This document shows, one piece after another, positions 7,665-55,476 of a DNA stretch of 64,000 bases. This stretch comes from Klebsormidium nitens. Its lineage: Eukaryota; Plantae; Klebsormidiophyceae. The translations under genes were made by a program, and so were the position numbers. The stretch lies in the NCBI GenBank assembly GCA_000708835.1, contig DF237404.1, positions 1 through 64,000 on the forward strand. Direction: 5' to 3'. The notes below the pieces were generated by a model. That model was not told the origin of the DNA. It did no database searches and worked only from the letters and a program-made list of their open reading frames with translations. Within the stretch, counting starts at the first letter, position 1; every line of letters begins with the position of its first letter.

Positions 7665-7853
7665 TCTCGATTTCATGTTGACTAAGAGCATGTTGACTAA
7701 AGAAGTGCTCGGGGACACAAACAAACTAAAAACCTAAACCCACAGTTAACACGCTCCGCACCGGCGTAAACACCCTAACCCCCAATCCAACCCTACCCGT
7801 CCCCCGGGCGCCCTCCTTAGTCAACATGGTCCTTAGTCAACATGAAATCGAGA
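7665..7853. mobile_element. MITE-like foldback element A with telomere-like core
   Basis: Perfect 22-bp terminal inverted repeat (7665-7686 / 7832-7853). Each arm has 2 copies of CATGTTGACTAA. Core has CCCTAA-like motifs and is homologous to the element at 23863. No target-site duplication seen. Confidence 0.75.
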
Positions 7854-13099: not shown

Positions 13100-14056
13100 G
13101 AGGCAACTATGATCATTTGGAATGCTTGACGGATTTCGTAGGGGCAGCTTAGTATACCGGCTGAAGTCTTGCACTTTCGTGCGACGGTGTTCAAAATGTA
13201 CCATATTGTGAGTTGACAGATCAATAGTTGTGCATAAACCCGACCCTAGTAGATATTTCACACGGTGTGGCAGATTCTTGCACAGCTTGCATGCATTGTC
13301 AATTCCTGCCATACGTGACATGTACCAACGTGTGACTGCGCAGCGTGAAACCATCCATGTGTCATCGCTCTACATCCAAGGATCTACGTCATGCATATAT
13401 AGTGATCGGATTATGCGATGAGCATGCTAGTTTGGTACTAAGTCATGCATTGGTGCATCGTGTGATGCATTATACAATCACATATGTACTCGCAGAACGC
13501 CAGATCTCAAAATGGCATGCAACGCGCGTTTGATCCTAAGAGCTGTATCCCGCGCGGCATGTGTGGCTGAAGTTGACAGAGTGCTTCTAGTTGGCCCCAA
13601 TTATTATGTACATGCTCAACAACTATTGATCCGTACCGACTACTGTAATTCCCGGGGACTTTTGGCCATACCGCAACGGTTCTAAACATAGGGTGCTAAT
13701 ATGATCCGGTGGATCATGGATGGCAGAGGGGTACAGATCGATGTTTTTGCCATCGGGCGATTTGCGGTCAACTTAGGATCAATTTTGCTGCACCGACCAG
13801 TAAGGCAGCCTGCAGACGTCTATCATAGTATTATCGCGTTATTGCTGCAGAATATGAACTTCGAGAAGAGATTAACACCAGAAAAAACCTTCTGCTCCTC
13901 AGGAATTGACATAGATGGACTTGATCACTGTCAACTTGACGGCTGAGTCAGACCGACCGACTAGAGACAGACCACTTGGGATCTAAATGACCACCTGCGA
14001 GATCGCTATTGGAATGAGGCGACTCTGTGGCAACAGGACGGAGGGACACATCACAA

Positions 14057-17000
14057 TCACTGCTGCGAATGCTGAAGGAAGCTCCCTACCAACTGTTGCG
14101 TCAACGAAGGTGAGAGCTGCCCGCTAGGCCCGTTGTCCACTCTCTGCGTTGTGTCTGCTGCCTGCAACGATTGCGCCTGCACCGCTTTTGCGACCGCGTC
14201 CCTCATCAGGGCCATGAACGGGTTCGATTGCAGTTCCGAGGGTGTCACGGCCGTCGGAAGCTCGTCCCCGTCCCCAGCTCCGGTCGCTTGCAGCATCGGT
14301 CGCATCGCTTGCGCGACCGCCGTGCTGATCACGGAACTAAAGACGGCACTAGGGTCCCCCACTACATCACTGCCGGAAAGGGGCGCACCAGTTAAGGGTC
14401 CAGTCGCACTGCCGATTGGCAAGCCCGGAAGCTTCGGATCGTCTCCCTCCCCTTCTTCAAACATCTCCTGCGAGAGGAGAGGTCCTCGCACCCCCCGGCC
14501 CGGGTCGTCCACGCCGGATCGGCAACATCCCCGGCCGCAGTGGTTGGGGACGACTGAAACTGGTCGTGAGTGAGGGGACCGGCTGGTGGAGCTCGAAGGG
14601 TGGCTCAGCGACTGGGGGGGAAGGGTTAAGGACAGGAACGTCGCCTCGGAGGTCTCTGGTCGGCTGGAGGGGGGCTGGTGCAGGGAGGGGTGGTAGAACG
14701 GAGTGCTGGCCGAGGGCAAGGGTTGCTGGGCGGTGGTGTAGTGCCCCAGGTCTAGTCTGCGCAGTGAAAAAGGGATGTCCAAGCGTCAACAGGGTAAACC
14801 TTTTCGTCTTCACAATGCGTGAGGGGGAGACATCAATCGTTCTTGCCTTTCATCTATTATTCTGTCACGCCTCGCGACTTAAAGAAGTAGCGCCCTGCCT
14901 TTGACTATTCGCGTAACTCGTAAGTGGTCCGAAGGACCAGAAAGCCACCCACTTCAGGCTCCAGCTACCACCTTCTACCAATCAAAGCGACGCTAATTAT
15001 CATGGCAGCTCTCCAGACACAACAGTAGAGCTGGCCGGGAGCACGAGCAAGTTCGGTAAACCAACCACAACTTGACCCACACTCTAACCCTACTGGTCTC
15101 ACAGTCCTGCAGGACAAGTGTAAGCGCCGGTTACTCTACAAGACCCCAATTTCGTAGGCCTCACCTTGCCCGCTTCGCACTCTCCGCCAACAGCTCCTGT
15201 GCACTCGACTGGCTATGCTCGCTATCCCCAGCTTGCCCGTCCAGGTCCCCATCAACGCTGTACGACCGCTTGCGTCCGAAGATGTCCACAATCTGTCCGT
15301 CAATGTCCAGGAAGCGCCGGGACAGCGTGCTGTTCCAGTGGTTCTTGATGGCGTTGTCAGTCCTGCGCGTGGAGCAGTGAAAAGATAATGAATAGCAGAC
15401 TTTGTGGGCGGATCTGAGGGACCTCCGTACGGAGTGCTAGGCCAACTAGTCCCTTAAATATCGTCCTTGCTCGACAGAACCAGCATCCCAGTGACTTACG
15501 AGTAAAGGAAGTTTTGATGCTGGTCCTCTCTCCTAAAAAGTTCCGCACCTTCCCAAGTAGCTTCAATTGAAAGCGTGCCAGCGCAACCAAACGGACCGGT
15601 AACTAGAGTAAGGTCATCTGGATTAAATGCGGATGTTGCAACTGTTGAAGCTGCCTAGCCCTCAGCCAAGTGACAAGCTGTGCCCCCTTTGTCTGGAAGC
15701 AGGTCACTAACACCAATCGAGGCAACAGCATCAACCGTGTCGTCTGCAGCACTTGATCAAAACACGGTTCGTCGGCAGCCTGGTGACCCTCAAAGTAACA
15801 AGGGCGTCTCAACGTGAACCGAACGGACACCGATTGAGGAGGTCACTCACCGGCCCGGAAGCAGACGTGCGATGGTCGCCCACTTGTTGCCGTGCTCCGC
15901 ATGCGCTGCGATGATCTTGGCGTCCTCCTCATCCGTGAACGGTTTGCGCTTAACCTGCGGGTTCAGTTGGTTGCACCACCGCAGCCGACAGCTCTTGCCA
16001 CTGCGGCCCTGGATCCCCCGTGCTGCAGCAGACAAGAAGGGTTACTTAAACCCAATAGTGACCATGTAGTAACCAAGTGTTAGTGAGAGTGAAAGTAACC
16101 GTGTTGTAAACAAGTAATCTGGAAGCAACTAATCAGAAAGCAACTGATCATCCAAGTCTAACTACAATTACCAAGCAAGTCTGCATTGCCCATGGGCAGA
16201 TAAGATGATGTATGAACGTTATTAACCCCTTAAGAGCTCCCTCAGGTCTGTAGCAAAAGATTGAGGCAAATCCATATTCTAGCTGTGCGCTTGACGATCC
16301 AGTTTCCAAGAATTCCCCCCATTCAGGTTGGAACAGAATCGAACGTACGTAAGTGCAAATATGTGCACCTAATATCTTGAAGTCAGTCATGCAGTCAGGG
16401 CCACCTGCTCTGGATCGTACCAGCCACGCAAGTAAGGGGCCCCTTTTCAAAGTTGCAGCATTGCTTGCTTTTGCAACGCGTCGGAGCGTTCAGAATTTTC
16501 GAGGCAAGGTGGGCTATGAGAGCAAGGTCTTAGAGAGGACAACCAGATTGGTAAACACCTGAAACGCCAGAAGAGCCAGGACAGAGACTAACGTGAAGTA
16601 GGCAATGCAGGAAGGAGAATGACAGATGTGCAGAGATTCTGTTGACAAAAGCTACCTGTGGCCATGCCTGAAACCCTAGTTGCGCCAAGTCAATGAAGCT
16701 CGACCAGTCTGTAAGTACATCTACATATTTATACCACCATCATCCGGTGCAAAGGAGCAGGAAAACGAGCTATTTGGTAAACCACGGCACGCAGAATGCA
16801 AACAAAAGCATGGTGCATCATTGATGGCACACACAGATGCAGCCATGCTGTTGGTGTTTGACGAAAAACAGACTGCATTTTACGACGAGGCCATTTCGCA
16901 AGACAAACCTGCTTCACCTGATCCTTTGTCGGACAAGAGGGATTTATAGTTGCATTGCTCATCAAGACCAAACGAGGACCAAAGACGAAGCACAGCCAAA

Positions 17001-17664
17001 GAAGCAGCATTTCCAAAGCGAGCAAGCCGACTTTATTCCAGCCTCCTTGGAAACAAAAAGCTGGCTTAGATCTTTATCAAGGGAGTGATGACAAGCAGTG
17101 CAGAATAAGGTGCCAAATATGTCACCATCAGCTACTTGTCGCAGTAAATATCCAATTGCGCAGCAATGTAATTGGCCCGCATACTTGCAAGCAAGCAGCT
17201 AATGAAGGGTGGCAACAAGAAGAGCTAGACCAGGTACATCGTTTGAACAAGACTTGACAGCACACATTGTTTCCACATGGCAAAAATCAGGACAACGCAT
17301 TTTTTTTTTGCTAGCTCGGACACTGGATAAGCACTCGCAAAACGATATTCAAAAAGAGAGGCAACATCAAAGCTCAGAGTGATGCGGACATAGAGACGCT
17401 TCAAACCTGCCAGAAGCATCCGTCCTCACCTATCAGCGTCCAGTTTCTTGGTCCAAAATGCTCGACGAGTCGATGCAAGAGATCGTCTTCGGCTGCACTC
17501 CAGGGGCCTTTGATTGTTTCTTCCCTGCTGACGTTGTTTGGCGCAGGTCCCTGCCCTTCCCCTCCGCTCAAATGGCTCCCGGCGCCGCCGTCCCCTTCTC
17601 CTCTGCTTTGGAAACTTTCATGTCCTGTCTGGAGCTGTTGCTCCTGACCAATTTCAGAGCTCAT
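14057..17664 (-). CDS. R2R3-MYB transcription factor (MYB-2), S22/S23-like, 4 exons
   Basis: Exons 17664-17430, 16022-15851, 15362-15165, 14756-14057 with phases 1/2/2 consistent. [62 protein letters not shown]...[26 protein letters not shown]; C-terminal LSLTLP motif. Confidence 0.93.
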
Positions 17665-23078: not shown

Positions 23079-26000
23079 TTACCAGAAGGACGGAAGCGGC
23101 TTCCACACTGAGGCCGCTAGGCCGAGAGCAATGGCGACACCATGGGCTATGTGCAGCCTCGTTGCGAAGTACTTAGCCATGAAAATGACCACCTTGTTCT
23201 GCAGAGAACCAACGGGAAAAAGGCCTTTGGTTGTGGATGTAGTTTTGAATGTGTTTGAATGTTAATTGCAACAAATACGGAGCGCTTCGGTACCAATCGC
23301 CACGTGCACGTCGAAAGACGAGATAGTTGATATTGACTCGTTTTTGCTCGACACAAGCAGGTCTTCATCTCGCATCTTGCATCAGGATTGTGTCGGAGCT
23401 CGCGCCCGCGGCAACTATTGGCCTGTAAGATCTGCCGGCTAGTAAAGCGCGCCAAAAGAACCAGACAAATAGAGGGCAAGCTCACCTCGTGGTTCTTTGA
23501 GATGAAGTTCTTCACCAGTTTGCCGAGGGGTATCGTTAGAGCTGACAGAATCTGCCAAAGACGAACTACAAAGGTCAGCCACGTACAGTAGGAGCTTCCA
23601 GTCATCGTGACTGGAAGACCGGCTCAGCCTGAATGGTGCTCGGGGTATAAAGTTGAGCCGGAACTTACTAGATTGAAGTGTCTGATAGTCGGGCATTATC
23701 GACTTTGATTAACCTCTCAAGCAGCTAATATTTGATCAAAACTGGACGGTATACCGACTGTCTCGAACGGTCAGTTATCGCAGACTCCACTTTCAGTTTG
23801 TTAAACTGCATAGTTGGCTGGTAACAACGCCACCACCCTTCCAGAGCGACAATGAGGAAGAATCTTCCATTTAGCAATAGTAAGCTTTAGCAATAGTAAG
23901 CTCACCAGCCTGGGACGGGTAGGGTTAGTCTGGGGGTTAGGGTGGGTTCGGGTGCGGAGCGAGTGTTTTTGTAGGTTAGGTTTTTAGTGTTAGTGCCGGA
24001 GCTTACTATTGCTAGGGCTTACTATTGCTAAATTGAAGAGACATACAATGAGGTCCACCCTGACGAACACGTCAATCACTCAGGAATCCAGTCTCGTAAA
24101 TGCGGTCCCCGCTTCAATTACTACCAGCAGCCAACGCTAGCCCGTGCTGAATCCAATCACGACTCCCAACGTGTGGCGCACCCCTGTGCACCGAACATGC
24201 ACCGAGTCGAGCATCAGTCGAGCACGTGGAAACGATTGGGTCAGATCGACAGTTATGACTGGGCTCCGAGACACGTGGCAACATAACGATGTGCGGCTCA
24301 CCCCGCACCACGTGGGCAGCAGCTTGGTCCCCACGAGCCCCCCGGTCACGAAGTAAAGCGCAGTCACGGCCGCGCTCGCCACTTGGGCGCCTCTCGCGGT
24401 CCCGAGCCGCACCTGGAAACAGGAGACAACGGGCTTTAGGCAAAGCGATATTTTCAGGCTTGATGATTGAGCCGGTAGTCAAGCAGCAGGAGTGCGTCGA
24501 ATCCAAACAGACGTTTCTAAGGGAGCGCGTTTTGTGCGCCTAGACAGCCGGTGGTAAATCTCGCAAGTTGGGTGACGCAGGGTTTATGATCAAACCCCGT
24601 TGTGATTTGTCGCCAAATCTATCCAAGTCAGAATAAGCGGCACGTCTCCTCACAGACATTCTGACGGCGCCCGGAAGGCGAGGGCGAGACACGAGAAGAA
24701 AATAGTCTGCCTTTGAGCTGTACAAGGTCGTTCTGAGCTGCCAATACAACAGTTCTCGCTTTACAAAACAAAGTCCAGCAAGCATGCCGGTTCTTGCACC
24801 TCTCAATCCGTGAGACTGCGCGCAGAGCCGCAGAAACACTGCCCCATCTCAATCCGTGACTGCGTTGGAGATCAGGGGAGCCTAGTGACAATTTCTACAG
24901 CCGACAACTGGGCACGCCGTTGACCTGGATGAGAAATTTACAGCTTGCGGCTGTATCGAGTCTACGGCAAAATGGAGAAGGTAACGCTTCCAATTACTTT
25001 AATACAAGTACGTCTCTGGACTGGTGTAACTTGGGGGCCGGGAGCCTTGCACCGACTTCCACTATCCTTACGCATATGCGTCAAAATAACGTCGCCAAAG
25101 CGGTAAACTCACCAGCGGCGACATCTTGCCGACCTTCGCGTCGTCCTCAATCTGCAGATCGAAATAGAAACCGCTTGTAAGTTTGCAAGTCTCGATTTTC
25201 ACGTCGCCAACCGGGCGTCAACCAAGGCACGCGTGACTGATAACCAAGGCAAAACCGCGGACTGACCCATCGGGGGTCAGGATGGGTTCAGATTACAAAA
25301 GGGGTGATGCGGGTGCTGTCGTTTCTCATCAGCTTGCTTCTGAGTTTGGTCTGCTCTTGACCCAATCTCGAGGTGCGCGGACTTCTACAGTCCCCACAAT
25401 CGAGAGGCGGATGAGACGATTCCAAAAACATCCTGGAGCGTCAAAACCTACCGCCCGATTCTGCAAGAACTTCTCGCACGAAACTTCGCGACATCAATGC
25501 AAGTGCGGAACGCCCTGGTGTAAGCGTAGTCGTTTCCGAGGCACCGAAAGCTCTCAACCCCATTTTTGTATCTGCTCAGGACGCACACAGCAAAGCTTTC
25601 TCTGGCGATCTGGGTTCCGGGCGGCAACCGAAAGGTTGACGAAGCACTCAATCTCTCGCAACCCTCTTCCACGGCTTTCCATTCGCCAAAGAAACGGACA
25701 GAGTCTTCAAAAAGATTCCTGGAGTACATGAAGCAGCATTCCGATGTGTTAACATTTGATGCAGTTCCCTTCAGCGACTAAGGGCCTGACGTATTGGAAG
25801 TCGGATTGAAGAAAAAAGCGCGAAACTCACTTGGTGAAAGTGCGAGCAGAAAAGGATGAGCGTGGTGGTGATGCCAACTAGAACGGACGCACCCAGGACC
25901 GTTGGAGTCACTTCCGGCAGCGCTTTGCAGCAACTGCACAGAGAGGATACGGTCATTCAAAAAGAGTCGTGGCGACTCTGGCGACCCATTAACGACTTTC

Positions 26001-28740
26001 GCTTCCAAAGGTAAAGGTCCAACGCGGCTTTCTAGGCGAAGAGCTGGGGACTAAAGGCAAACAATGGTTAGCAGTGTAATCTGGCTGGAACAGTGGTAAG
26101 TCTGTCCCTAGAGCAGTGTGGGATATAGTTTGATGGGCACGGGAAGTTTGTCGCCTCCTACGCCAAGAGGAACAACCTCTGCCTCCGTCTTAGGTAGGGT
26201 TAGAGATCAAAGTGTTACCCCCAAGAGTGTGAAAGGACTCCGTAATGAGTATCTGTCTTGTAATTCAATCGAGGGGCGTCAGCAAGAGCGGCGAATGAGG
26301 ACGCGGGTAGTCACTTGTGGTGGCGTTAGCAAAAGCGACACTAAGAGTTCGGGTGGCCCACCTCTTCTTGACTTGGCTCAGGTAGAAGGCGCTCGTGGCT
26401 AGCGGCCCAAAGGAGACGAAGCAAAGGGGCTCCCCAAGCCCCATGTAGCCTAGTCGGAAGGGCGGGCTCTGAAAAGTACAAGGGAAGCACGGTGGTTTAG
26501 GTGCCCTGAAACGTGGTTCCGGGTTTTGAAAGTCTTGTCAGGTTACAAGCGTACGTGATTGCCCTTGACGACTACGACTTTCTGAGCGATGCCAAAGCGG
26601 GGATGTCGGGTAAAGAGCTTGCCTTGACGTTGCCGAACATACGATTGGAGCAAGCTTGCCAAGCAGACAGCTGAGACACTCCTCCTTCATAGGCTCATCC
26701 TATTCTCCAGATCGAAGAACGTAGAGGCAACTCCGTCAAAAACGATGCGAGGAGCGCGTCAGTACAACCACGGCCATTGACCTTGTTCGCTGAAGTGAAG
26801 CGTGAAAGATCTTCTTTAGTCTCACCTGGTAAACATAGCCGCAGGCTACTGCTGCTCCAAGTAGCCACAGCATCCGTGGGTCGTTTACCGTTTTTGCCAA
26901 CCAGGCAAAGCCCCCGAACGCGATGATCAACAAAGCAATGGCGATGACCAATACGAGGTTTCGGCTGCAAGGTACCAAGAACACTTAACAGCTCAGAATG
27001 GAGATTCGTCTCGTGTCAAATCATAGGCTATCACAAGGAAGCAACTTTACGTCTGTTTGCAGGAAACCGGAGACGTTGCGGGTCCTCCGATGAAGACAAA
27101 AAGTAGGACATTAAGATCTTCCGTTCTAAGGGCTCCTTAGCAAAAGCAGCACAGTGACAGCGATCGGTCTGGAGCCGAAATCGGAAGAGAAGGCTGTGTT
27201 TAAGGGTAGTGGACAACGAACCTGCCAGTCATGTTCACAACCGACTCCTTCTTGTTCTTGTCAACCTCGGTATCTGAATCGAAAACATCGTTCCTGCAGA
27301 GTAATACGAAGGGTCAGAACGGACAATCTAAAACAGGACATCAGTATGAATAACAACACTTTTTCCGAGTATCATGTGCCCACAACCTACCACCACAAAG
27401 GATTGCACTCGGGGCAAGCTGGCCACTTGACAGATGGATCTCTTGTCATTTGATGGTCATAATCACTCATGGATCGAAGGAAGTCGTCAAAAAAACAACT
27501 CTCTCAAGCTTCCCAAGCACCAGCCACCTTCATGGCTGGTGCTTGGGAAGCTTGAGTCACAAAATTTAAATTAGAGCTGCTACACTTAGTCTGTTGTCCT
27601 ATCAAAACAACGCTGAGCCATGATCAACTATCAGTGAGTTGTATCTTGGTTTGTCCTAATTCTATGCTAAGATGAACATATTTTCGAACTTTCCCCTGGT
27701 TCTGGTTCCTCACAAACATAGCGGAGCAATCCTCAAGCGAACTAGGAGTATCAAGAAGAAACCTTGGTTTCAACTTACGTCAAGTTTAGCCATGCTATGA
27801 CCAGGCATGATGATCCCAACAAGGTCCAGAATCTGGAGTGATAGAAGACACCAGTCTTCTGATACGCGGCTGCGGCCCCAACCTGCAGAACAAGCCGGTT
27901 CGGCACTGCTTAGCGAACAACGCGTTGGCACTTATTGTCACATCATTCGCCCCCGCTGATGACTTCCTCTCGTTTATTGGCCACATCTACAATGAATCCA
28001 ACCACGACTTTGATTTACCCAAATTTGGGTCGTCAACGAGCATCTTGTCACTCTGTTGCGACCAAGTGCCTGCCTTTTCCACCCCAAATGTCTGTCATTT
28101 TTGCACCAGTAAAGTCAAAGTTTAGAAACGTAATCACAGCATGGTTTACCACTCAAAGTTGGTGCCACCACCCAACATTTATCTCCACAGTTTCCTAGGG
28201 TACTTTGGAGACCTCTTCTGTTGATCCACTCCAGGACCAATTGGCCTTGTTTCTACATGGTGCACTCACCAGGATGGGAATCAATGCCACGGTGTAAATT
28301 GGAAGCTTGACGGCCCTCCATATCAGTGTGGCCTGGCTCAATTCCTCTTCTACTGGTGGTGGTTCAGTTGCCTCCGCCAGCGGCTCCTCTATAGGCGGAA
28401 CAAAGTCCCCTGCTGTGCACGCAACTCTTTTTCCTGTTCTCTTGTGCCTTTCAAGTTGTAGTCCTCCTGCAAGGGGGACTCTGCTGCCGTTGCCTCCCGC
28501 ATCTGGTCTTAGCGTCGACCGTCCCCTCTGTAAACATGGCAGAGTGGCTTTCTCAATCGTGCTGAATGGAATGGGTAACGTCCCCATTGGACGTGAAGAG
28601 CGCCTGGCGTTTTGGTAGGCAGACCCTTGCACAGGCTGCTGTGTGGCAGGACATCCCGCTGCAGAGATTGTGCTGGCTTCTCTGTACATAGTCAGATTGC
28701 CAATGTGCTCCACTGTGCGGGCTGCCGAAAGGTGTGCCAT
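23079..28740 (-). CDS. menA: 1,4-dihydroxy-2-naphthoate phytyltransferase (MenA/ABC4, phylloquinone synthesis), 10 exons
   Basis: Exons 28740-28270, 27882-27779, 27293-27222, 26964-26826, 26468-26362, 25933-25831, 25151-25113, 24412-24302, 23551-23486, 23198-23079, all phases consistent. Motifs TLIWRAVKLPIYTVAL, NDVFDSDTEVDKNKKESVVN, SPPFRLGYMGLGEPLCF, SHFHQIEDDAKVGKMSPLVRLG, IFMAKY; plastid-type N-terminus. Confidence 0.95.
23863..24039. mobile_element. MITE-like foldback element B, in a menA intron, with telomere-like core
   Basis: Terminal inverted repeat 22/23 bp matched. Each arm has 2 copies of TAGCAATAGTAAGC. G-rich core GGGACGGGTAGGGTTAG...GGGGGTTAGGGTGGG is homologous to element A in the opposite orientation. 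Confidence 0.75.
27503..27556. repeat. Perfect 24-bp inverted repeat with 6-nt loop, in a menA intron
   Basis: CTCAAGCTTCCCAAGCACCAGCCA-CCTTCA-TGGCTGGTGCTTGGGAAGCTTGAG. Confidence 0.9.
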
Positions 28741-35884: not shown

Positions 35885-38800
35885 ATGGCTTTGACTGCGG
35901 AGGCTGCCGTCAGTGGCAATTTGCAACCATTCACTGCACGCTCTTTCCATAAAGATGGCGCTCCGGCAGACCATGTTGAAACTTCGCGCTTGCATCCAGG
36001 AAGATTGCGTGCAAGAGCAGGATCTCCGCTTCTTTTTAGCATTCAAAAGGTTCCTGCTGCCCCTCAGATACACTGCTTGCAGAAAAGTGAGTCAGTCAGT
36101 GGTTTAGATGGATTCCCCAGCATTTTCTTGGAGCGTTCTCACAGCCGGTGGGCTAAACGAAAAGGTAGATGCAGAAGAGTGCGGCAACATGCTGTTGCTA
36201 AGTGTGAAAGTGGCGGGTCGCCAGCAAGGTTTGACGTCGCTCCAAAAATGTAAGCTTAGTTGCACTGCTCAAGTAATCCTGCAACACATAAGGTGTCACA
36301 GATGCTATCATGATGTTATACGCAGGGTAGCTTCGACCCAGCAGATCATGAAAATCTGATCCTACTCGAGCTATCTTCGACACTCCATGGCGCCTTGCTA
36401 AGAAGATCAACGAGAACAGCGAAATCTACAATCTTTTACAAGCAAAAGCACCCTTGAAATCCTGCACTGTGTAGGATCAGTCTCTACCCTTTTCAGAACA
36501 AGTGTACTTGGGCAGGTGCATGAGACGAAGTCGTCACTTTCTTTTACACAACTACCACCACCTGTCACCATTTCAACACCACATCTGACCTCCTTATCTG
36601 TTTGTTTCAGGTCCATGATGGACGTCTTTGAGGTGTTGGCGAATCGACTCATCACAAGCGCAGCCTCAATACCACCAGGCCAGAAGTAAGTGAAGATGCA
36701 AAATTGGTGACAATGTGTTTTAGGGGCAATTCCAGGATCCAGTGAGGGACTGATCAATGCAATGGCTTGCTGAGCTTTCGTTGTCCATTATGGTGATGGA
36801 AATTCAGAATCGAGTGTCTATTTCTGGTGATCTATGAAAACGAAACCAGCGCCACCATACATCCACGTCGTGCGGAATCCTTTAAGAGAGAGTGTAATCC
36901 GTTTCAACTTGCTTCTTTGGGCTCAAAAGACTCAAAGGTCCGCCAGGTCGAACTCGGAAGCGAGTGTCGCACTGCCAACCTGTAACCTCGTTGTAGTAGA
37001 ATCTAGCTGACTCAGGACTTCATGCAGGTACATGGTTGGGGTCGCTGGTTCTCCTGGCTCTGGTATGAATTGCTCCTTCTTGCGAGATCCCAATAGTACT
37101 TATGCATGCTACGATTCTTTTCTTCAAAGAAGGTTGGAACTTCTTGTGAAGCTGCAAACCTTGCTTGTTCAGATTGGTGACAACCATACTTGAAGGCCTT
37201 CGTGCCTGTCGTTTGTCATTCTATCAATAGACAAACGTATATCTTGTGATTTTGAATGGCTGAAATTCTCACACTGACGGTCAATCATTGCACAACCACC
37301 TCTGGTACGAGTTCGAACCTCTAGCTTGGTATCTATCGGATATTCTTTATCGTGTGCAGGGAAGACAACTCTAGCGCTTGGTATCTATCGGATATTCTTT
37401 ATCGTGTGCAGGGAAGACAACTCTAGCTCGAAGTGTGACCGCACTCATTAACTCGAAGCAGTCTGATCCCGACTTGGCTGTCAGCGTCCCCATGGATGGC
37501 TACCACCTGTACAGAAAGCAACTCGACCAGATGCCGGTGAGTGAACCTTCACCGGGCATCGTTCTTAGCTAGATACTGGCCGTTGTGGTCCGGATCATGC
37601 AATCTTCAAAAGTGCCTGGTTGATTGGTAGATGCTGTGCCGAACGAAGTGTACAGCGTCGGAGTCCCAATTGTCATTTAAAAAATCTGCTTCGAGTTCCG
37701 ACGAGCAGGAAACCGCTGATGTCGAGTCCCGTTTACTTCATTCATGCAGTATGATTGTTTCCTTGCCAAAGCTGGCTCTTCGAGCTTTACGACGAGCCAA
37801 GGGGAACGAGCTCAAAGATTGAACAAAAGACTTTGGGGCGCTCCATGCAGGATCCAAAAGAGGCGCATGCAAGGCGGGGCTCTCATTGGACTTTTGATCC
37901 AGTCGGGTTGCTATCGACATTGAAAACGATTCGAGAGAAGGTACGAACGACCTGTTTACTGTGGTGGGGACGGTCTGACGGTTACACTTAATTACGCAAG
38001 TTCGTATGAAGTTTCTTGTCCGCTTCTATCAACATTAAGCATGTGAAGCTGTTTGAACCGCGAAGTGGTGTATTCACGAACGCACGTGCAGCCGATTGCT
38101 GCACGTGAACAAATGCTTGATGGTCGATTGTCCGTTTGACATAGCCAGTTCGTTCGCAGACGCAGACAAAGACCTCCGGACCTTCCCGATTTGCTGGGTG
38201 CCTGTTGAAGTACGATTGAAGCATCTCCCGTCTTCCTCTCTTACATCCACGTGCGGCAAACAGTATGTTTACGTTCGCAGGGGCGAGCTGCGGTTCCCAG
38301 CTTCGACCACGGGGTAGGAGATCCAGTTGACGGGGATATCGAAGTAAAGCCAGAGTAAGCCAGGAGCTCAAGATAAGCTACTGAGTCAGTAGCTTATCAG
38401 TAGCTTATCTTGAGGTGCTTTGTCTTTGTCTGGTTTGCTCATCTGACGTCGTCAGTGCTTGTTCGAGAACGGTCTAAGGTTCTTTCGACTCCTGCAAAAT
38501 GTGCTATGACCATGTGTTCGTAATTTTCTGTCTCACGCCTGCTTTAGTTGTTTTGTTGCTGACAACATCCAATCACGCATCTGTGTACAGGAACCGCATA
38601 GTGATAGTCGAGGGCAACTACCTTCTTTTGGATGAGGACCATTGGAAGGACCTTCGAGACCTCTTCGACGAGACTTGGTGGGTTGTTCGGATCGCACACA
38701 TTACGCTCAGCAGAACAGAGGTCTCTCAGGTCAAGAGTCTCCGTGCGTTTAATACACGGACAACGAAGATGACGATTGCAAATCTGTTATGGGCGACGCA

Positions 38801-44470: not shown

Positions 44471-45959
44471 TTTAAAGCATTTCATCCTCATTTACTTAAG
44501 CCTGATCTACTTAGGTTTAAGCAATTATTCTCTAGCTCATATTGTACAGTTGGCTTTCGAATCTGAGACAGATTCTGAGATCCTGACAGTAACAGCTCTT
44601 TTGACATCAGAGTTCCTCAACGGTAAAACATTGCACCACTTGCCATATCAATGCGACCTTTTAAAGTCAGCTACAACTCATGAACCAGCGCAACGAACTG
44701 CACGGGGTTTGGCACTACTCTATCCGGCCATGTATTGCTTGGATTCTGACGCTGCCGAGGCGCCATCGGATGCTCCACTCGCGCGCGACACTTGTGCTGA
44801 CGTCGGAAAGGAGCTCGCTGTACCCGTTGCACTGCGATGCACAGAAGAAAACAGAGGTTCTGCGACAATCCTGGGCGGTACCAGTTGCAATCAAACAGGC
44901 CATTTCCGCCCCGTTCCAAGATCTCCTCCTCTGCATGCGTAAAATGCTGATTGAACCTTTTGCACTAGATGGACCAGCTCCTTGTTCGGCCAAAACATTG
45001 AAAATCAAATGAATGTGACTAATGCCCATGCAGAGGCTTCCGCTTAGCAAGCGTATAGTCTTGGTCGTCTTTCCAGACGGTTCCCAGACTTGCGTGTTTG
45101 AAGCGTGTTTTGGAAGAGGAAAACCCCAAGCCGTCAAGGAATTCTTTGGTTTACAACCTCCTGGCACCTGCAAGAGCCTTCCGCTCCATCGCACGTGCCT
45201 CACACGTCCGAGCAGCGTCTTTGAGTCGTCACGGAAAGTGCATAGAAGGCGCTCCCGACAGCCCGCTATAGCTCAACAAATACGACAAAACAGAGACCAA
45301 CGACACATTGTGCGAACCCCGCTGCCGCACCCCAAGGACAAAGGAGCTACTACTGCTGCCGTATCCCAAATATGTTCTGCCCGTTCGATATGCTCGAACC
45401 CCAATAAAACCACACAAGAGCCGGAAGCAAAGAGCGGGATCCGGAGCAAAGCACTAATTCCGCTGCACAATTCCTCAAGAAGGGCCGCTCGCAACACCAT
45501 ACCCAGTCCGCCCCACCGACTCGGACCTACTGATCACACGAAAGAAAGAGATGAAGAAGCAGCAAAGCACCGGCTTTTCCTCACCTTTACCGATAAAAAC
45601 CGCCCCCACGCGCTTCTGGCCCGCCCTTCGACTTCACCTACTGAAGCCGCTCCTACCGGCCCCCCGCAGAACACAAACCGAAGCACTGATTCTATCTCAC
45701 CATCCCCAAGAAGAGTCGCTGCCTCCGCCGTTCCCCCGCCCTTCTGGCCCTTCCTTGATATCCTGGGACAAGCTTTTACGAAGTCAAACTGATCCAAAAG
45801 CAGATATCATAAGTAAAGCATCAATATCACCTCCCCCGAGAAGAGCCACTTCCTCCGCCATTCCCCCCACTCGTCCTGCCGGCCCCGCACTCAGGCATCT
45901 CAAGAACAGAAATAAAGGAAGCAAGGGAGAACAAAGCAGAGCAAAGCACCCGCTTTCTC

Positions 45960-48679
45960 TCACCTTCCCCGAGAAGAGCCGCTTCCTCCGCCGTTCCCCC
46001 CGCCCGTTCTGCCGGCCCCCGGCTTCTCCATGTTGGTCACCGTGATGTCGACCCCGAGCGTCGTCTGCAGCGCGTCTAAGTCGCTCGCCAGCCGCGCGGT
46101 GCTGATGTCCGGCGGAATCGCCACAATTCCGTCCATCATGAACAGCGTGGTCCCGCCAAACGGTGCCTAGGTAGAAGCAGCCGAGAACGAACGACATAAG
46201 CTACACGGGTTGGGCGAGGGGGTTGACGACAGGGGGCTGTCAACGACGATGCTGTCTGTTAAGAAAAGCGTCGAGCTGCCGAAGAACGCTAGAAAGGACG
46301 AATAAACAACAACGTAAGCGGGAATCGATGACGTCAGCTGTTGAACTTGGCAAAGGAAATGACGCCTGCGAGTGCCGATGCCAAGAAGTGTGCCACGACG
46401 CTATGCATCAATAAGGGTACCGTGCTGCCGGAACATGCTTCGAAGAGGCGAACAGATTCAGACAATGACATTAATCAAAGAGAGCGAACTCGGTATCGCC
46501 CTTGGCCGAACGGACTTGACTTGGCGTCAGGTAGCGCAGCCTTGAGGATGTTATACTTGAGACTTGAGGCTGTGAAAGATCAGCAACCAAAAACAGACGC
46601 CATGAGTCTTGGCCATATTTGAAGGGCAACCCTTGCGACTGTGTTGTCTTGCCGCCCGCACGCTAGCTGTGGCACTCCTGGGACTAAAAGCTTGCGGGGA
46701 CTGTTATTCGGAGGCAAGCCGTTACGGACATTTTGACTTCACATTAACTGTGGGACGGTTTGGTCGCCTCCCACGAACACGACTGCAGAAAGGAGAAGCA
46801 TACCTCTTCTGTCCCCGTCTCGAGGCTCTCAATGTTGACGTGCAAAGACGCCAGGTACTCAGTCACGTTATACACCAAGCCTGCCAACAAAACAGCAATC
46901 TTGTGAGTAAGATCGCTTTCGAGCGGCTTTGAGTTGTTTCAAACAGTCGCTGCGGCAGTACCCGGTCCTGGCTGGATATTCGTGTCAAGGACGAACGGGC
47001 TTGAAGTAGCAGTCCAATCATCAACATCGTAAGCACCATCTGCGACCGCACTTCTAGCAGCAGAAATTTCATGAATCTGATCCGGGCACAACACGTCCAG
47101 GCCGAATCGCATCGGCTCGACTTTTGCGGATTTGCGCACGAGCGGACTTCGAACCGACCTCCCGTCTCGAGCCAGAAACCAAGGGTTGATCTGACAAATC
47201 TTACAGATCGTTAGCTTTCTAATGTGCAAAACGCCTGCGTTTCGTTGTATAGACACCATCCCCATTCAGTCGGCCCCCGAGGACTCACCAGGGTTGTCGG
47301 CCCCCCGCAAGGAAATACGGCGGAAGCGTTTCTGCAATTTCTTCAGATACGAGGGGTCCTCGCTCGTCCACCGGGTGAAGACGTGCAAGCCCTCGATGTC
47401 GCTCAAGCTCGACCGGATCTCCTCTGCTCGGCTTGGGACCCTGCAAGAATCAAAAGAGATTCGTATTCAAACAACCTGGAAGATCTGGAAAATGGAAACA
47501 ACGATTCGTTTAGGTTGAGCAATTTAAACAACCAACGACTGGAAGATTTCAAGACGTGCAGCCGCAAACGAGTGCCCAATCGAACTTGAAAAGGAAGCCG
47601 TCCGGTTCAAGCGCCAGGAAACGATGTTTGCCGAAAGCGTCCCATGATTGCAGCACACAGCCTACGGCGGAACCACCTGTAGGACATTGAATCCCGAACC
47701 CTCTTTCTGCCTAAAGCGGAAGGCATTACGGGCCACGCATCCCGGTTGTCAACATCCACACAACTTCGCATCCTTGTTCAGAATCCATCTAATGGTGCGT
47801 CCCTTAGAACGCATCGTAGCACAAGATCGCTCTATATTGGCCAGCTAAACACGTTTTCCGCACGGCCAACTATTACCATCCAAATTGGCCAAGTTGCACC
47901 TGTCGTAATGAAGCCAACAAAGTAACCCGGCGAGGCTTGCTGCTTTCGATACTCAACAAACAAATGCAAAGAATCAAGCTGCTCACGTAGCGTCCACAGT
48001 AACTAGCATGAGGATGCTGAAGTCGCCCGCGAGGCGTGCCATTCTGCTCTCCTCCACATTCCCCCCCAGCTCCAGCAAGCGCTTGCTCAGCCGCGACACG
48101 ATGCCCGGCCGGTCGGGGCCCGACGCTGTCATCACCAGCTGACGGACTGCGATACAGACAACGGAAACGGGTTTGCGTTCCACATAACCAGGTGACATCT
48201 TATATCTCCTCCTAACAGGACAAGAGTGGACTCTTGGGGGCCTACACGGACCTTGCTTGGCCACAGCCCTCTTAAGGTCGAAGATAAAAGTTGCCAGCTT
48301 GAGATCAACTGGAGCCGCTGATGGGGGAGGTGGTAGCAGGGCTGGTTCCTTTTGATTCGCTTTACGTCCAATGTTCTCCCTCAAACGGTTCTGACAATCG
48401 AAAGGCGGGGGCAGTAAAGACTGCACAGCCAACTGGAAACTGCATGTGCACGCTGAAGACAAACCTCAGCGTATGAGTCGAGACAAAGGGGACTGAGTCA
48501 TCACTGCAGACATATATGCGCACCTTTGTAGTGGTCCTGGAAGTCAGGTGAGGAGACGCTGCCAGTGGTGTGGAAGGGAGCATACGGCGTGAGCTGGCTG
48601 AAGGCGGGGAGCGACGGAGCGTAGTGGGATGCTGAGCTGGGCCATCGGCTCAGGTCATCCTCTGAGTAGCCAAACAGAC
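45960..48679 (-). CDS. GcvR-like tandem ACT-domain protein (glycine cleavage regulator family); 5' end unresolved
   Basis: Exons 48679-48524, 48146-47987, 47440-47289, 46880-46804, 46166-45960 in phase. ACT1 LVMTASGPDRPGIVSRLSKRLLELGGNVEESRMARLAGDFSILML; ACT2 ISLRGADNPGLVYNVTEYLASLHVNIESLETGTEEAPFGGTTLFMMDG. Confidence 0.82.
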
Positions 48680-50287
48680 CTGTAGGAAATGAACGCCGTT
48701 GACGAGTGAGCACATCAAAGAATGCGGGCTACTTGCCAGATAAGCAGTTGGGAGACCGTTTGATTGATGACATGAAGACCATATATTCGGCCATGGTCAG
48801 AGTCAGATTTCTGGGTGACCACGAGCGCAATGGGCAGATCCTGAACAAACTGCATGAAAGAAACGGTCACTATGACATTTAAAACATGGTTCAACTCAGC
48901 GTCCATTTATATTGGGCCAATGTCATCGCTGCAGCAAATACATGGTATGTCCATCAACAAATGCATCCAATCTGGACCTCATTCAATGCTCTGCTTTCAA
49001 CGTACTAGAAACAGTCTGCCAGCATCTGATGCAGGGGTGATGGGTCTGTTCGACCCCTCAGTTGTGAGCTGCCAGTATTCTCATCGCACACAAGGTGATC
49101 ATAGGGCCCGAAACAACGGGCAGTGCGGTGCGGCCAGGATGCTGCTTGCACTGCTTGACGTCAAGTAGGACTTGACAATGAAGCCACTCTACTCCAAGTA
49201 GTCAAGTTTGTGGTTTGTCAACTTGAAGAGCCTCAATCATGACAATTGTAGATGCAAACCCTAAACACCTCCTGCTCAGCAAACTTCAGAAGGAGCGCGG
49301 CCTGCTTACAGCAGTGATTCACACATGGCCAGCAATGCAACCTCAAGTCCGTGAAGCGACCTTATCAGCATGTGCAGTTGTCAAGGTTTGGGTTGTGGCT
49401 TCATTCTCCTTGTTGACTTTCATAAAGCACTTTCTTTGAAAGCCACTTGCATTTGTGAACTTTACGTGGCAGAACTAGGATTCATGCTATCCAAACAATG
49501 ACATAGAGGTTAGAATGAGGACCTATGACGTGTATATATTGAGCAGACACCCATATTTGAATAAGTACCTATCTGCAAACATGCATGAAGCTCCACATGC
49601 CGAGAGCCTGATGATACAATAAGGAGAGAAGCAATCGATATCCACAGCCAGACCATATTCAAAGTACAGACGTATCAAAATGCAAATGATTATAACCAGG
49701 TTGGAAGGGGCACATACCCGATTGCAACCACCTACAGCATTGCAGGAGTCTCGTTCCCTGGCAACCAAGAGCCTCTCTCCTCACAAGTTCTGGCCTTCCC
49801 AACAGCCGGGCAAGATGCCAAGCTCTCAACCCCAGCATAGCTGTTGAAGTCTCTCGTTAACTCCTTCCTCCGTTGTATCCTTTCCCGCGCAAAAGAAAGA
49901 GATGCTCGAGAAAAGCAGAACTCTTTCTCCTGGACCTCCGGCTCCAGCTATAATCCTGAACAAATGGTAATCATAAACTCTTCTGGAAAGGGAGGCAGAC
50001 CGCCCATGAAACAGAAGCTGCAGAACAACTTGAAGTTGACGAGGAAGATGACTTTTATGCAGCGCCTTTAGCCTATAAAGTTTAACTTTAGGCGAGCGTC
50101 CTCTTCCGGATTAGATCACTAGGTATAAGCTTCGTGATCTATTTGAAGAGGTCAAGAGTGGTCTTTCGTCAGAGGAAAGTGCCAAAAGATCTTGCATGAG
50201 AAAAGGGCTTTTAGGGCTGTGAAGTTTAAACGAAATGGTTGGTACATAGATTGTGATGTGCGACACCATTGCATCCGAGTTGACCAA

Positions 50288-50396
50288 GGGGGGTTAGCTC
50301 AGTTGGTTAGAGTATTTGTCTTACAACTGCCGACGACAGCATGTCGTGAAGCAGGAGGAGCACAAAATGTCCAGGGTTCGAGACCCTGATCCCCCA
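50288..50396 (+). tRNA. trnV-UAC: tRNA-Val(UAC) with a 35-nt intron at the canonical 37/38 position
   Basis: Acceptor stem GGGGGGT/ATCCCCC+A73; D arm GCTC-AGTTGGTTA-GAGT; anticodon stem TTTGT/ACAAA, loop CT-TAC-A; intron 50326-50360 with C32:G (50358) anticodon-intron pair; T arm CAGGG-TTCGAGA-CCCTG; TTTT at 50411-50414. Confidence 0.88.
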
Positions 50397-51420
50397 CATC
50401 ACACGTTGCCTTTTGCTATCACTCACCCTTTTGCTGGGCAGCTTGTTACGTATCTAGTACAGCTGCCTTCAATGCGCGAGTGCACCATTGGTTTGCAATG
50501 CAGAGATGATTTAACGGTTTGCACACATCAACTTCTTCACAGCTTCCTTCAATGACCGAGCCCAATGAGAATGCAACTTAAACGGCCCTCCATATACCAC
50601 TGCCATTCTGCCATGCTATGTGATCGAATTAAGCACATGGCCGCAGCACAGAAACACGGAGGTTCGCATAAGTTTTCCTCCATATGCAATTAGTAAGTAT
50701 GCCTTCGGTTCCTATATATAGTTCAATCATTCCTCAGACCTACGACGCTAAGTTTGGGACCAACCTTACTGACGGGAACTGCCGAACACCGATGCTACTA
50801 AGATTGGACAAGTTGATCTTGAATCTTGCTAATTCCTATGTTCAATTCGTTTGGGTTCACATAAATTCTCAATCTGCAACATGACAGTGAAGCATGAGAT
50901 TTGTTGATAGAGCTAGCGCGTCTTCACATTCGAATGTTGGTCATCAAGAGCTTCCTAAAAGGAAACCTCCAACGTCCAATCAACGACATCTAGATATCCC
51001 TCGTGAAGCACCACCTTGTATCTCTATGATTAGAATTCACCCTTGACGAAAATCTCAATAACATACCACCCCATGCATACCATTCAAGACGAGACGAGCA
51101 GACATGAAGAGGTGTTGTACATCCGAACGGCATGAAGTTGATTGACCTTGTCAGCATACTAGGATCGTATACCCCCCCTAAGCGCCACTACTTTCACACT
51201 CTAAAAAGCTCCAAATCAAGCACCGGGATAGAATGCGCCACAAATTCCTCAAGTACCATGTTCAAGTAGCTGGCATGAGTCCCTTGTTGGGGGAAGGAGG
51301 TACAAACAGATTCCTCCCGACAGCAACAATTGCAACTCTCTATTGCAATTGCAGTTAGCTCGTCTTTACAATCTTGAGTTCTACCGTACTCCTTGAAATC
51401 AGTGCCTTACATGGGTGAAA

Positions 51421-51532
51421 GACACAAGTCTTCTTCTGGAGGAGAGCGAGCAACCGGCAGACATCAAAAGTAAGCTCTTCTTGCTCATAATGTCCACCGG
51501 TTGCCAGTCCCCCTCCACAAGAGACTTGTGCC
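51421..51532 (-). ncRNA. Candidate pre-miRNA hairpin 1
   Basis: About 44-bp stem on the minus strand with several G-U wobbles and few mismatches; 5' arm contains UGGAGGGGGACUGGCAACCGGUG (51517-51495). Confidence 0.6.
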
Positions 51533-51645
51533 ACTAGCAATTTGCGATTCCAGCAACATCTATGCAATAGCCCTATGCTTACATGATACTAGACAAACCT
51601 CCAGCTCTTTTGAAGTACCCCCCCAACACCTTCAACCCACTACCC

Positions 51646-51740
51646 CCTGGATGGAAACAAGCAACCGGCAAGCACCACGTGCAACAACTAGTTGGACGCA
51701 ATGCTCACCGGTTGCCAGTCCCCCTCCAAGAGAAGTGCCT
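51646..51740 (-). ncRNA. Candidate pre-miRNA hairpin 2
   Basis: Same 23-nt arm (51728-51706) paired to a divergent opposite arm; loop unrelated to hairpin 1. Confidence 0.58.
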
Positions 51741-54700
51741 CGCAAGAAGCTGACTCTCTGCAGAGAAAAAAATCTGTAAGATCTTCGGCAACCTTAGAGA
51801 CTTGCTACAAGCTTCCTTAATAGATGGCAACAACCCAATAAGACCATACAAGCAACACAAATGCAAGATCAAGATACACCGACCTTGGGCAAGCTTCGCT
51901 TGTAGGCAGGGGCACAATGCAGAATGAGCCGTATCTGAACTTGGTTAAATTTAAAAGAGCAAACAGCTCAGCTGCTAATAGCAAGACACTAACAAGCAGA
52001 ATTGGGGCATATGAGGGGCACACTCCAAGAAGTGAGCAATCTGTATGCTGGCCCAGCAATGAAATGCAAACAAAGATTTGAAATAACACCCGAACACCAA
52101 GAAGTCAAGTGCGTGACACAAAACAGGTGCACAAGAAACAGGACATTGAAGTAATTGAAGCTTCAACAGAAGCGATTCATCTGACCCCAACAAGCTGAAT
52201 TTGTTAGATAGCCTGGGAACAACCAGGTCTACATGACGGGGTGTAAGCTCACAAGTCCGCGGAAAACTCATATGTAAGCAGGCGCTCTAGAGGAAACATC
52301 AAATGTAAAAGGCAATCACCCGCAACCCCTAGTGTAAAAGCTTTCATGACAAACTTCAATGTGGAGCATTTGTTGATCAATGAAATGCCTCCAAATAATA
52401 GATTGAACAACATGCAAAAAAACACCAGCAGAGCTTCTGTAATATTAAACCAGCCAATATGTCTTGAAAATGTGGAGTAAGCACATTGCAGGGCAGATGA
52501 AGAAGATAAAGAACGAAACGCACTTGGATTACAATCTTTCAGATTTTTCAATCTTTTTGAACACGACGCTAACTGAGACTCACACACCAATTGATTGAGT
52601 ACACAGGCCCCTGGTACAGGCTGGCAGCCCTAGCAAGGTGGGGTTACTGTCTGATCGCCCACAATAATCAATGCAGTAGAAGCTTTGATTGTACTTGGCA
52701 CATCTTACATCTCCTGCAAGCTCTGTTACAGCAGTCCCCTATGACAAGCAATCTGTCAGACAACTAATGAGAGAGTCTCTGACCAGAGACTCTGAAGACA
52801 TTTCGTGACAAACCAAACAAAGACCAGTGAGCTTGTGCAGCAGGTGCAGATTGCACTGATCGCTGAATGGTGCGCTGGACGGATAAAACATCGAAGTTGT
52901 CTAACCAGAACGGCCCGCAAATTAAGCTTAAAACCCTTGATCGATCCAAATCCTGTTTTCAATCACCATTTTGAATTGAAATGCCACCCATGAAGGCATC
53001 ACTCTGTGCGAACCTGAAAGAAGAAGAACTTGGTAGACCACCGTCTGTGAGCCTCCTGATATCTCCCTGAAACTGCACATGCATCTCATTCCTATAGCGT
53101 TAACTTCCCGACAAATAGGCAACACATACCTCAAGTGGTGACCATAGCTTACCTTATATTTTCGCAGGCTGCTGGGCTGTAAAATGGCGAACCCCAGAGG
53201 ACGCAATTCTGCTAACATCAAATACCATTCTGAGGACGTGATCCTTCGCCTGGAGGACCTGGCGGTTGTCCAAGAAAGCTTCACTTGAACAAGGCCAGTC
53301 CATTTTGCGAGCTGGCAGGGTCAACCAATAACCTGAACAAGAGAGTTTTCAATGATCAGAACCTGAGTGAGGGGAGCGGCCAAGAAGCATCCAGGACTTC
53401 AGGGAAACCTATGCAAGCATTTAAAGCCACACTTGTTAAACCCAGTCGTTATCACACTAACACGTTAGAAATCAAGCAAGACAGCAAATCAAGAACAAAA
53501 CAGAGGTGACAAGCATTTAAATTGCTCCCATGTCTAAGAGGAGCTAGCAGCTTGCAGCCGGCTTAGGTGCAAACTGGGGTACCTAATCGAGAAGCAATGC
53601 CCTGAACAAAAGAAGCTTAGAAATCATTCAAGTTGCAGGCTTACCTGACAAAGGTTTCACTAGTACAGGCATCCATCTGTTGGGTGCAGTCAGTGCCAAA
53701 GAAAGATCCGGAAACCATGGTAAGGACAGTCCTCTAAGTTCACGCCATTTTAAGAGCTCCGACAACCCGCTATGGCAACTCATACATTGATTATGGCAGT
53801 AGAGAAATGCGACACCTGGAACAAGCGATGGCCCTCAATGGGTGAGAGCACCATTGCTTATAAACCCGCCTCGCACACCCGCTGTTCTTGGATTTATTAG
53901 CACCAGGCGGAAATTCAGGGGCATGAACCAGCTGGTCCAGCTCGTGGGTCGTCTTTGAAGTTTGATCTTCTTCCAAGCTTCATGCAGGCGCCATGATTCC
54001 GAACTTGCGCGCTAGCTGGACCGTTGAACCACTTCTTACATTTACCGTGGTACGGTAGGCTTTTACTTTTGTTGTACAGGTCGGGCCAGGACTTTCGTTC
54101 CGAAAGAACGACAGTTACTGTCGTTGACGCTGAAAAGTTCCTTGACGACTGCAGAAAGGGCCAGGTCCAGTCAGACATTGCTTGCGGTGTCAGTGTCGAG
54201 GGCAGACTTCTCAATCGTCGTCGAACTCACGAAACCGTCCACTGCAACTTCCCGGTGACTTTCTGAAATATCTAACGCGATCGGATCCTGTCACCCGGTG
54301 CCTACACTGCCAGAGAAAGCGTTACGTACTCCGGTTCTGACAATGACATCTTAGATATTGTCAATCATGATCATCATAGCGTACCGGCACTTTTGTTGGC
54401 GGGCCTTGGGAGTGCTAATAGTGGGCGTTGGCGAGGTGTATGGTCGCTTGAAATTGGAGGAAAATGCAAGAAATATCTAATCTGAATTCGAACTGTGTTT
54501 GTCATCGAAAACGCAGCAACACTGGATGGTAGCCTTTAAGACCCCAGTACGTACCTCAGTGGCATTTATGGAACCATCATAACAACCCGCCTGACAAAAA
54601 GTTTTCAAAAGAGGAGGGAAGTTGACGTGGCGGCTCGGGAAGTACACTTGAGGAACACTTCGAATGCCACGAATATCTACGAGTCCCACGCGTGAAGCCT

Positions 54701-55476
54701 CCACCAATAAGAACACCTCAAAGTTCCAGGTGGGACGCCGAAGTTTGCGGGACGGTTGGTGTCAGATTCAAGTCTCCTTCCATTCCTCCGCAAGGTCCCA
54801 CGTGACGGTCAAAGGCACGGCGCAACGGTAAGATGGCCGCAAGGAGCAGATTCGTTGAGCTTGCATGATGGAATGATGGAAGAGTACGTGTGCTAGCTCG
54901 CAAGAATAATCATTCCACAACGCTTCAATGCAGACTCAGAAAGCTTGTTTTAGAGGTTGCCAACGGCGGTGTGCGTCAGGAGAGAAAATCACAAAACTTG
55001 CGATAGATGACCCGTAGCATTAGTAGCACTATGTGCAAGTTGCTTTTAAAAGGCAGTCATGCATCGCCTCAAACCCTTCAATCTTTCAACGGTGGTCTGC
55101 ACATCAATATATGTAAAGTAGAAATTCTGCTTGAAGACCTCGCTGCAATGCTGTGGCGAGTTGCACGGAGTTGCTGCATCCGATATCGAAGTGGCCAAGC
55201 TACCTAGTTACGTCTAATTAATTGCAGCAACATCAAGTCAAGTCATGGCTTTCTCCTTCTAGGGCCTCAAACAGGCATTGGAGAACATCCTGTGGAATCA
55301 CTCGAGTTACAAGTCCTACAATGGTACACGCTCTACTATGCGACTCCAATGAAAAGTAGAAGAGCATGCCCAAAGTGAATTGCACTCACTCGAATATGCT
55401 GAAACTCCCCATCAGTCCAACGATTTTGTCGATCAGTCCAAACTTTGCTTGCTCCCAACAGAGCCGATTTGCTACT

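Follow-up and report, generated by a model that had tools for sequence, protein, structure and literature searches.

Rice miR166k-166h has been described as a homologous polycistronic MIRNA gene (PMC5869255), and in Physcomitrium polycistronic miRNAs make up about 25% of the total (PMC9291395). Short land-plant precursors that are processed from loop to base have a structured terminal region of ~42 nt and a small loop (PMC3787264), and loop-to-base precursors are more conserved above the guide/star duplex than below it (bioRxiv 10.1101/129684). In Chlamydomonas, introns or UTRs of coding genes are the source of most miRNAs, via a PAZ-less DCL3 (PMC4817775). Homologues of DCL1, AGO1/5/10, SE and DRB2/3/5 have been reported for the Klebsormidium lineage, whereas HYL1/DRB1 has not (PMC7994812), and algal AGO1-clade proteins are reported to be without the DDH triad (bioRxiv 10.1101/2022.01.18.476847).

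Here we present a locus of Klebsormidium nitens in which two long hairpins with an identical 23-nt 5' arm are carried by one spliced transcript. This twin-hairpin RNA is very probably a new microRNA gene of K. nitens, the small RNA itself being predicted. Homologous polycistronic plant MIRNA genes are a known kind, to which the locus would add a family that appears to be new. The case gains interest from its host, a streptophyte alga, which belongs to a group close to the land plants and is not one itself. Neither a K. nitens miRNA catalogue nor the predicted guide sequence was found in the literature searched, a body of text that leaves most subscription journals outside its coverage.

The analysis covered a 64-kb stretch of K. 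nitens DNA (the window). The original prediction, made from the letters of the window, had placed an identical 23-mer 211 bp apart on the arms of two hairpins, and we found both the copies (51495-51517 and 51706-51728, spacing 211 nt) and the folds. The 23-mer sits within an ungapped 87-nt direct repeat of the same spacing, and no third copy occurs at up to 3 mismatches in the 64-kb window (chance expectation 0.00). The hairpins, HP2 and HP1 in the order of transcription, are composed as follows.

51638-51737, minus strand: HP2, first hairpin along the transcript; stem extendable to ~51623-51753
51706-51728, minus strand: HP2 copy of the 23-nt 5' arm; predicted 21-nt guide at 51708-51728, with a 5' U and putative ends
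51667-51707, minus strand: HP2 terminal region, 41 nt long, with an upper stem of ~17 bp and a 5-nt loop
51646-51666, minus strand: HP2 predicted star, placed from 2-nt 3' overhang geometry
51421-51532, minus strand: HP1, second hairpin along the transcript, with a 15-nt lower stem
51495-51517, minus strand: HP1 copy of the 23-nt 5' arm; predicted 21-nt guide at 51497-51517
51456-51496, minus strand: HP1 terminal region, 41 nt long, with an upper stem of ~17 bp and a 5-nt loop
51435-51455, minus strand: HP1 predicted star

Folding of both strands agreed with the earlier claim that pairing is better on the minus strand: the whole hairpin region reached -179 kcal/mol (z -11.2) on the minus strand and -116.6 kcal/mol (z -6.4) on the plus strand. 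Folded alone, HP1 gave -72.8 kcal/mol (z -10.3) on the minus strand vs -55 on the plus strand, and HP2 gave -67.3 kcal/mol (z -8.05) vs -40.3; the 105-nt spacer separating them folded no better than its shuffles. In a window-wide hairpin scan HP1 and HP2 ranked third and fourth by MFEI (1.07 and 0.99), below only two short near-perfect inverted repeats, and had the most base pairs of all (37 and 36). The hairpins measure ~100-112 nt and their stems are long and near-perfect (37-50 bp). We set the 5' end of the guide at the first invariant base, a U, and assumed a guide length of 21 nt. With these settings each predicted guide/star duplex has two symmetric mismatches and zero bulges, and both the guide-to-star distance (41 nt) and the loop (5 nt) are the same in HP1 and HP2. 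The tandem UG/UG wobble previously noticed on the minus strand was located, as U-G/G-U, at guide positions 22-23 of both hairpins.

Other structured elements of the window are recorded in their own right. Its strongest short hairpin (z ~-11 to -12) lies at 27503-27556, where a perfect inverted repeat of 24 bp encloses a 6-nt loop; it is strand-symmetric and therefore a candidate for a young foldback or a hairpin RNA. A 23-nt inverted repeat (91%) at 38362-38419, in the region of a phosphoribulokinase/uridine-kinase-family gene, forms a stem of ~33 bp (z -6.6). Two short elements at 7665-7853 and 23863-24039 have terminal inverted repeats of 22 and 41 nt, and their interiors (7748-7803 vs 23912-23967), with telomere-like AACCCT runs, resemble one another as well as a stretch in a locus of a relative (L075:7459-7502); a small family of non-autonomous transposons is possible.

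Evidence at the RNA level came from contigs assembled from four runs of four studies (X3, X9, X10 and X12) and placed on window positions 48900-54850. The 'RNA' labels of these runs are guesses, and X10 was labelled 'DNA?'; the precise GT-AG skips in the contigs, however, indicate that the runs, X10 included, hold spliced RNA. The contigs describe a minus-strand transcript of three exons, the last of which carries HP1 and HP2.

53851-53890, minus strand: possible core promoter, a 40-nt block with GC-box-like and TATA-like elements
53645-53873, minus strand: exon 1; contig 5' ends vary (53840 in X12, 53873 in X3, 54010 in X9)
53333-53644, minus strand: intron 1, 312 nt, GT-AG; from contigs and splice sites
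53153-53332, minus strand: exon 2, 180 nt; from contigs and splice sites
51758-53152, minus strand: intron 2, 1395 nt, GT-AG; spliced and retained forms, from intron-spanning contigs
51105-51757, minus strand: exon 3 (last), with both hairpins; 3' end at ~51105-51136, from contigs X3, X9 and X12

Contig joints 51757-53153 and 53330-53643 were present in 4/4 runs, and the intron ends read CT..AC on the plus strand, that is GT-AG on the minus strand. The transcribed strand is the strand that folds better. Transcription starts at ~53840-54010, varying by run, and RNA coverage between ~54010 and ~54850 is absent or very low, so the hairpin transcript is a separate unit; an extended 3' UTR of the upstream prolyl hydroxylase was rejected on account of this gap. 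A 29-nt similarity (83%) was seen between 53831-53859, at the 5' end of the hairpin transcript, and 50465-50493, upstream of the ACT gene, and may be chance or a common promoter-region motif.

The cores of the two hairpins align without gaps. The guide arm is identical at 23/23 positions, the star arm at 19/25 and the terminal region at 17/35, and the flanks (18/60 and 8/60) show random-level similarity. The earlier description of an identical mature arm with a drifting star and loop is borne out by these values, and we obtained the same counts for the arms opposite the 23-mer, which differ at 5/24 positions, two of them G-C/G-U exchanges that preserve pairing. The loops, by contrast, are not unrelated as had been claimed: the loop regions align gap-free at equal length and include four compensatory double changes. 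A common structure for both copies has 93% of its cells paired, as against 39-54% when the copies are slid out of register. Four pairs, all in the upper stem, are altered on both sides between HP1 and HP2 and five on one side; the covariation shuffle control, which is weak with only two rows, gave 27/500 shuffles. The lower stems of the two hairpins are unrelated to each other. The most likely reading is that the pair arose through an old tandem duplication, as part of a miRNA-gene explanation that we hold to be probable as a whole.

A structured lncRNA, in which both helices act intact and undiced as sites for dsRNA-binding proteins or as stability elements, has to be weighed against that explanation. 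Such an RNA would share the stable, abundant and spliced transcript, the contigs that pass through both hairpins and the selection on hairpin structure. Here, however, one arm is invariant and its partner drifts via wobbles and mismatches, and the invariance begins exactly at a 5' U; this asymmetry fits a guide that pairs with its target in trans and not a protein-bound helix. Since a conserved multi-branch or loop motif is also missing from the hairpins, we regard an intact structured RNA as improbable.

An equally low probability is given to a hairpin-siRNA locus or an imprecisely diced proto-miRNA, from which heterogeneous small RNAs would arise with no dominant product. Heterogeneous dicing would keep neither a fixed window nor a fixed terminal length of 41 nt, and only a single 23-nt window is invariant in the two copies, whose geometry is equal. 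These constraints stand against the points in its favor, namely the long near-perfect stems of 37-50 bp, the reported lack in K. nitens of HYL1/DRB1, which is the precision factor in land plants, and the many algal 'miRNA' loci that turned out to be siRNA loci (PMC4817775).

Conservation in relatives, which the original prediction had named as a check, could be followed in run X10 (coded organism B). This run holds two or more haplotypes, probably three: one matches the window at ~99% identity, and in the others 14-16% of positions in intron 2 and exon 2 are substituted. X10 is a hybrid or else stems from a mixed culture or an environmental sample. The haplotypes were reconstructed from summary tables (40/265 differences listed) and contig ends. 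Listed substitutions of a diverged haplotype near HP1 fall at 51417, 51419, 51421, 51425, 51429, 51459, 51467, 51468 and 51471, and among the 40/265 differences listed none lies within 51430-51458, which includes the predicted HP1 star. Diverged and near-identical contigs of X10 both end at 51501, and the next pair start at 51507. Given these common contig ends and assembly words of 31 letters, we infer that the haplotypes are identical over 51472-51536, the whole HP1 guide arm included, so that a haplotype ~85% identical elsewhere would keep this block unchanged. At the background rate the probability of 65 identical bases is ~1-6e-5. Positions 51730-51759 are also common to both X10 haplotypes; the HP2 arm is covered by diverged contigs, its haplotype letters lying outside the listed differences.

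In the diverged haplotype two substitutions turn upper-stem G-U pairs into G-C and another two disrupt pairs of the lower stem, and both hairpin and duplex persist; the retained upper and the two broken lower pairs would fit the footprint reported for loop-to-base precursors. Intron 1 is spliced out in this haplotype. At 80%, no alignment was obtained for its distal 3' exon or, in a further contig, for the inter-hairpin spacer, and the 53851-53890 block is alignable in the diverged haplotypes whereas the adjoining sequence is not.

Genomic contigs of relatives were reached through a long ORF 8 kb from the hairpins, which is 99% identical to K. nitens KFL_004550080. In a synteny walk from this gene the relative SRR23617307 was syntenic only to window position 43630, its contig ending 3 kb beyond, and two more distant JGI relatives have RDR genes where the synteny of SRR23617307 with the window stops; synteny with the relatives' genomic contigs breaks 8 kb from the hairpins, and the walk thus stopped short of the orthologous hairpin locus. 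As a separate observation, in distant Klebsormidium-like metagenome contigs an RDR cluster (L075:11247-18000; L076:1-985 and 12290-17304; L079:2594-8462) flanks the genes syntenic with window 36-43 kb and is absent there in K. nitens. Copies of the hairpin unit number two in the window and zero across ~80 kb of loci from relatives, and a covariance model built from both cores recovered no further copy in either. Exact matches to the predicted guide 21-mer numbered 0 in JGI metagenome contigs and viral contigs, a null that is uninformative because the neighboring ACT exon, used as a query, also retrieved no Klebsormidium locus from the same JGI metagenome collection.

These data also bear on a neutral origin, in which a decayed foldback or MITE-like pair, or a gene-converted duplicate hairpin, would lie by chance in a non-coding transcript. 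Further short perfect inverted repeats do occur in the window, but we consider such a relic very improbable: no target-site duplication, the sign of a MITE or foldback, longer than 3 nt was found within 4 nt of any hairpin boundary, identity peaks inside the stem and not at its ends, the pairing depends on wobbles specific to the transcribed strand, and the ~85% identical relative retains the block. Moreover, the RNA contigs are unbroken across both hairpins, and therefore those runs contain no other expressed locus with a common 31-mer. An H/ACA snoRNA was rejected, as the hairpins have no large internal loops, are separated by a 105-nt spacer and are followed by a tail without ACA.

The locus had been said to lie in a region with no protein gene. 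The NCBI scaffold DF237404.1 of GCA_000708835.1 matches window 30942-53418 at 100%, and its annotation is empty from 49839 to 53418, with no gene over the hairpins. The longest open frame of the transcript is the following.

53154-53783, minus strand: longest ATG ORF, 105 codons, spanning exons 1-2; probably not a conserved protein

Its length corresponds to the 95th percentile of shuffles, and its exons, searched one by one, matched no Pfam family. Against 1.84 billion representative proteins the exon-2 frame gave three matches, all of them tandem-repeat artefacts, and the diverged haplotype has a net +17 nt frameshift within the ORF. Open frames crossing the hairpins, used as bait for orthologous contigs, gave no match. 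The ORF is not credible, and we read the host transcript as non-coding.

An ACT-domain gene (annotated end 49838) is a neighbor of the transcript, and so is a prolyl 4-hydroxylase gene, which lies upstream on the minus strand. Some details of this neighborhood were noted in passing. RNA contigs join 49712 to ~48682, which makes 48683-49711 (minus strand) intron 1 of the ACT-domain gene and 49712-50044 its first exon; near this gene's 3' end, at 45697-46019, a 60-nt repeat occurs three times at a spacing of ~130 nt. A tRNA-Val(UAC)-like gene at 50288-50396 (plus strand), which has an intron of ~36 nt and whose acceptor stem contains a U-U mismatch, scores 54.7 bits with the Rfam tRNA model and was missed by ARAGORN in bacterial mode.

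The absence of a recognised land-plant miRNA family, stated in the original prediction, agrees with the covariance models of Rfam 15, which gave no match for the hairpins; the best score was a chance 17.6 bits vs a threshold of 80.5. Nor was the guide found in the text supplements of the Mesostigma viride miRNA study (PMC6947507). Two apparent resemblances were rejected. The first, to the 5' end of miR528, extends to only ~12/21 identical positions and has no Rfam match; the second, an 11-nt miR156-like stretch in one star arm (plus strand), does not occur in the other hairpin and has no Rfam match either.

Taken together, minus-strand splicing, the lack of a credible ORF, the bulge-free duplex, the conservation of the arm, the missing target-site duplication and the missing Rfam match favor a miRNA precursor. 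The original prediction of a candidate polycistronic precursor on the minus strand is thus supported by indirect tests, the miRNA and its ends being predicted.

The plant MIRNA criteria of Axtell and Meyers (2018) reportedly call for a single-stranded transcript, a hairpin of at most ~300 nt, a duplex that is free of side stems and has no more than 5 mismatches and no more than 3 nt in asymmetric bulges, a 20-24-nt guide and star with 2-nt 3' overhangs and at least 75% precision in replicated libraries, and are said to include DCL-dependent production and AGO loading. The present locus has a spliced single-strand RNA, hairpins of ~100-112 nt and a duplex with 2 mismatches and 0 bulges; in addition, the guide is constant while star, loop and flanks drift, and the host RNA is non-coding at the hairpins. 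By structure and conservation, then, the locus would rank as a strong candidate MIRNA gene and not as a validated member.

We consider it probable that the locus is a homologous bicistronic MIRNA gene that gives a 5'-U guide of ~21 nt. According to this proposal, minus-strand transcription of an independent, intron-containing non-coding gene would yield a pri-miRNA with two pre-miRNA hairpins in its last exon, and a Dicer-like enzyme of the DCL1 clade would cut each hairpin twice. Both hairpins would release the same 5'-arm guide, 5'-UGGAGGGGGACUGGCAACCGG-3', ~21 nt and possibly 22-23 nt long with a 5' U, together with star strands that differ between them, and the two copies would double the guide output per transcript. 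The guide would then load into an Argonaute of the AGO1/5/10 clade and repress one or more complementary mRNAs; within the window a G:U-aware scan found no target, nothing scoring better than 6.5. If the locus is a miRNA gene, processing from loop to base is somewhat favored, but the direction is uncertain because HP1 also has a 15-nt lower stem, a base-to-loop signal, from which the lower stem of HP2 differs. Moreover, with an algal AGO1-clade protein that lacks the DDH triad, repression might not involve slicing, and this feature, along with the reported absence of HYL1/DRB1, means that land-plant rules may not carry over.

A further and more tentative reading, which we consider possible though somewhat short of even, is that of a conserved Klebsormidiophyceae miRNA family with short loop-to-base geometry, diced by a DCL1 without a HYL1 partner and served by an AGO1-clade protein without the DDH triad. 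If that reading is true, MIRNA genes of the land-plant style (independent, spliced, polycistronic and loop-measured) are older than land plants, and slicing may not be needed for the guide to act. As an expressed and conserved substrate whose cut sites are predicted, the locus gives a concrete handle on the miRNA pathway before land plants. Three questions become testable with it: whether an algal DCL1 can dice precisely in the absence of HYL1, whether loop-to-base processing is older than land plants, and whether an algal AGO1-clade protein without the DDH triad slices or represses otherwise.

In comparison with known systems, the locus resembles homologous polycistronic plant MIRNA genes in having two hairpins with the same or a related mature arm on one non-coding transcript. 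It differs from rice miR166k-166h and the moss clusters in its unrelated sequence, in its Klebsormidiophyceae host, and in that the K. nitens miRNA is predicted from sequence and transcript. Like several Marchantia MIR genes it is an independent gene with U2-type introns, but most intron-containing Marchantia MIR genes have the hairpin in exon 1, whereas the K. nitens hairpins lie in the last exon. With MIR156, MIR160 and MIR171b/c it has in common a uniform structured terminal region (41 nt in K. nitens vs ~42 nt) and a small loop, and, as in short loop-to-base precursors, the guide-to-star distance is constant; the upper stem may also be more constrained than the lower, the haplotype events being few. 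It is unlike MIR156, MIR160 and MIR171b/c in that no sequence relation exists, HP1 adds a 15-nt lower stem and the lineage is reportedly without HYL1. Finally, it shares lineage specificity and near-perfect stems with the miRNAs of Chlamydomonas reinhardtii (PMC4817775) and with 116 pre-miRNAs of Mesostigma viride (PMC6947507); unlike the situation in Chlamydomonas, however, the K. nitens locus is non-coding and stands alone as a gene, and its lineage has a DCL1-clade enzyme.
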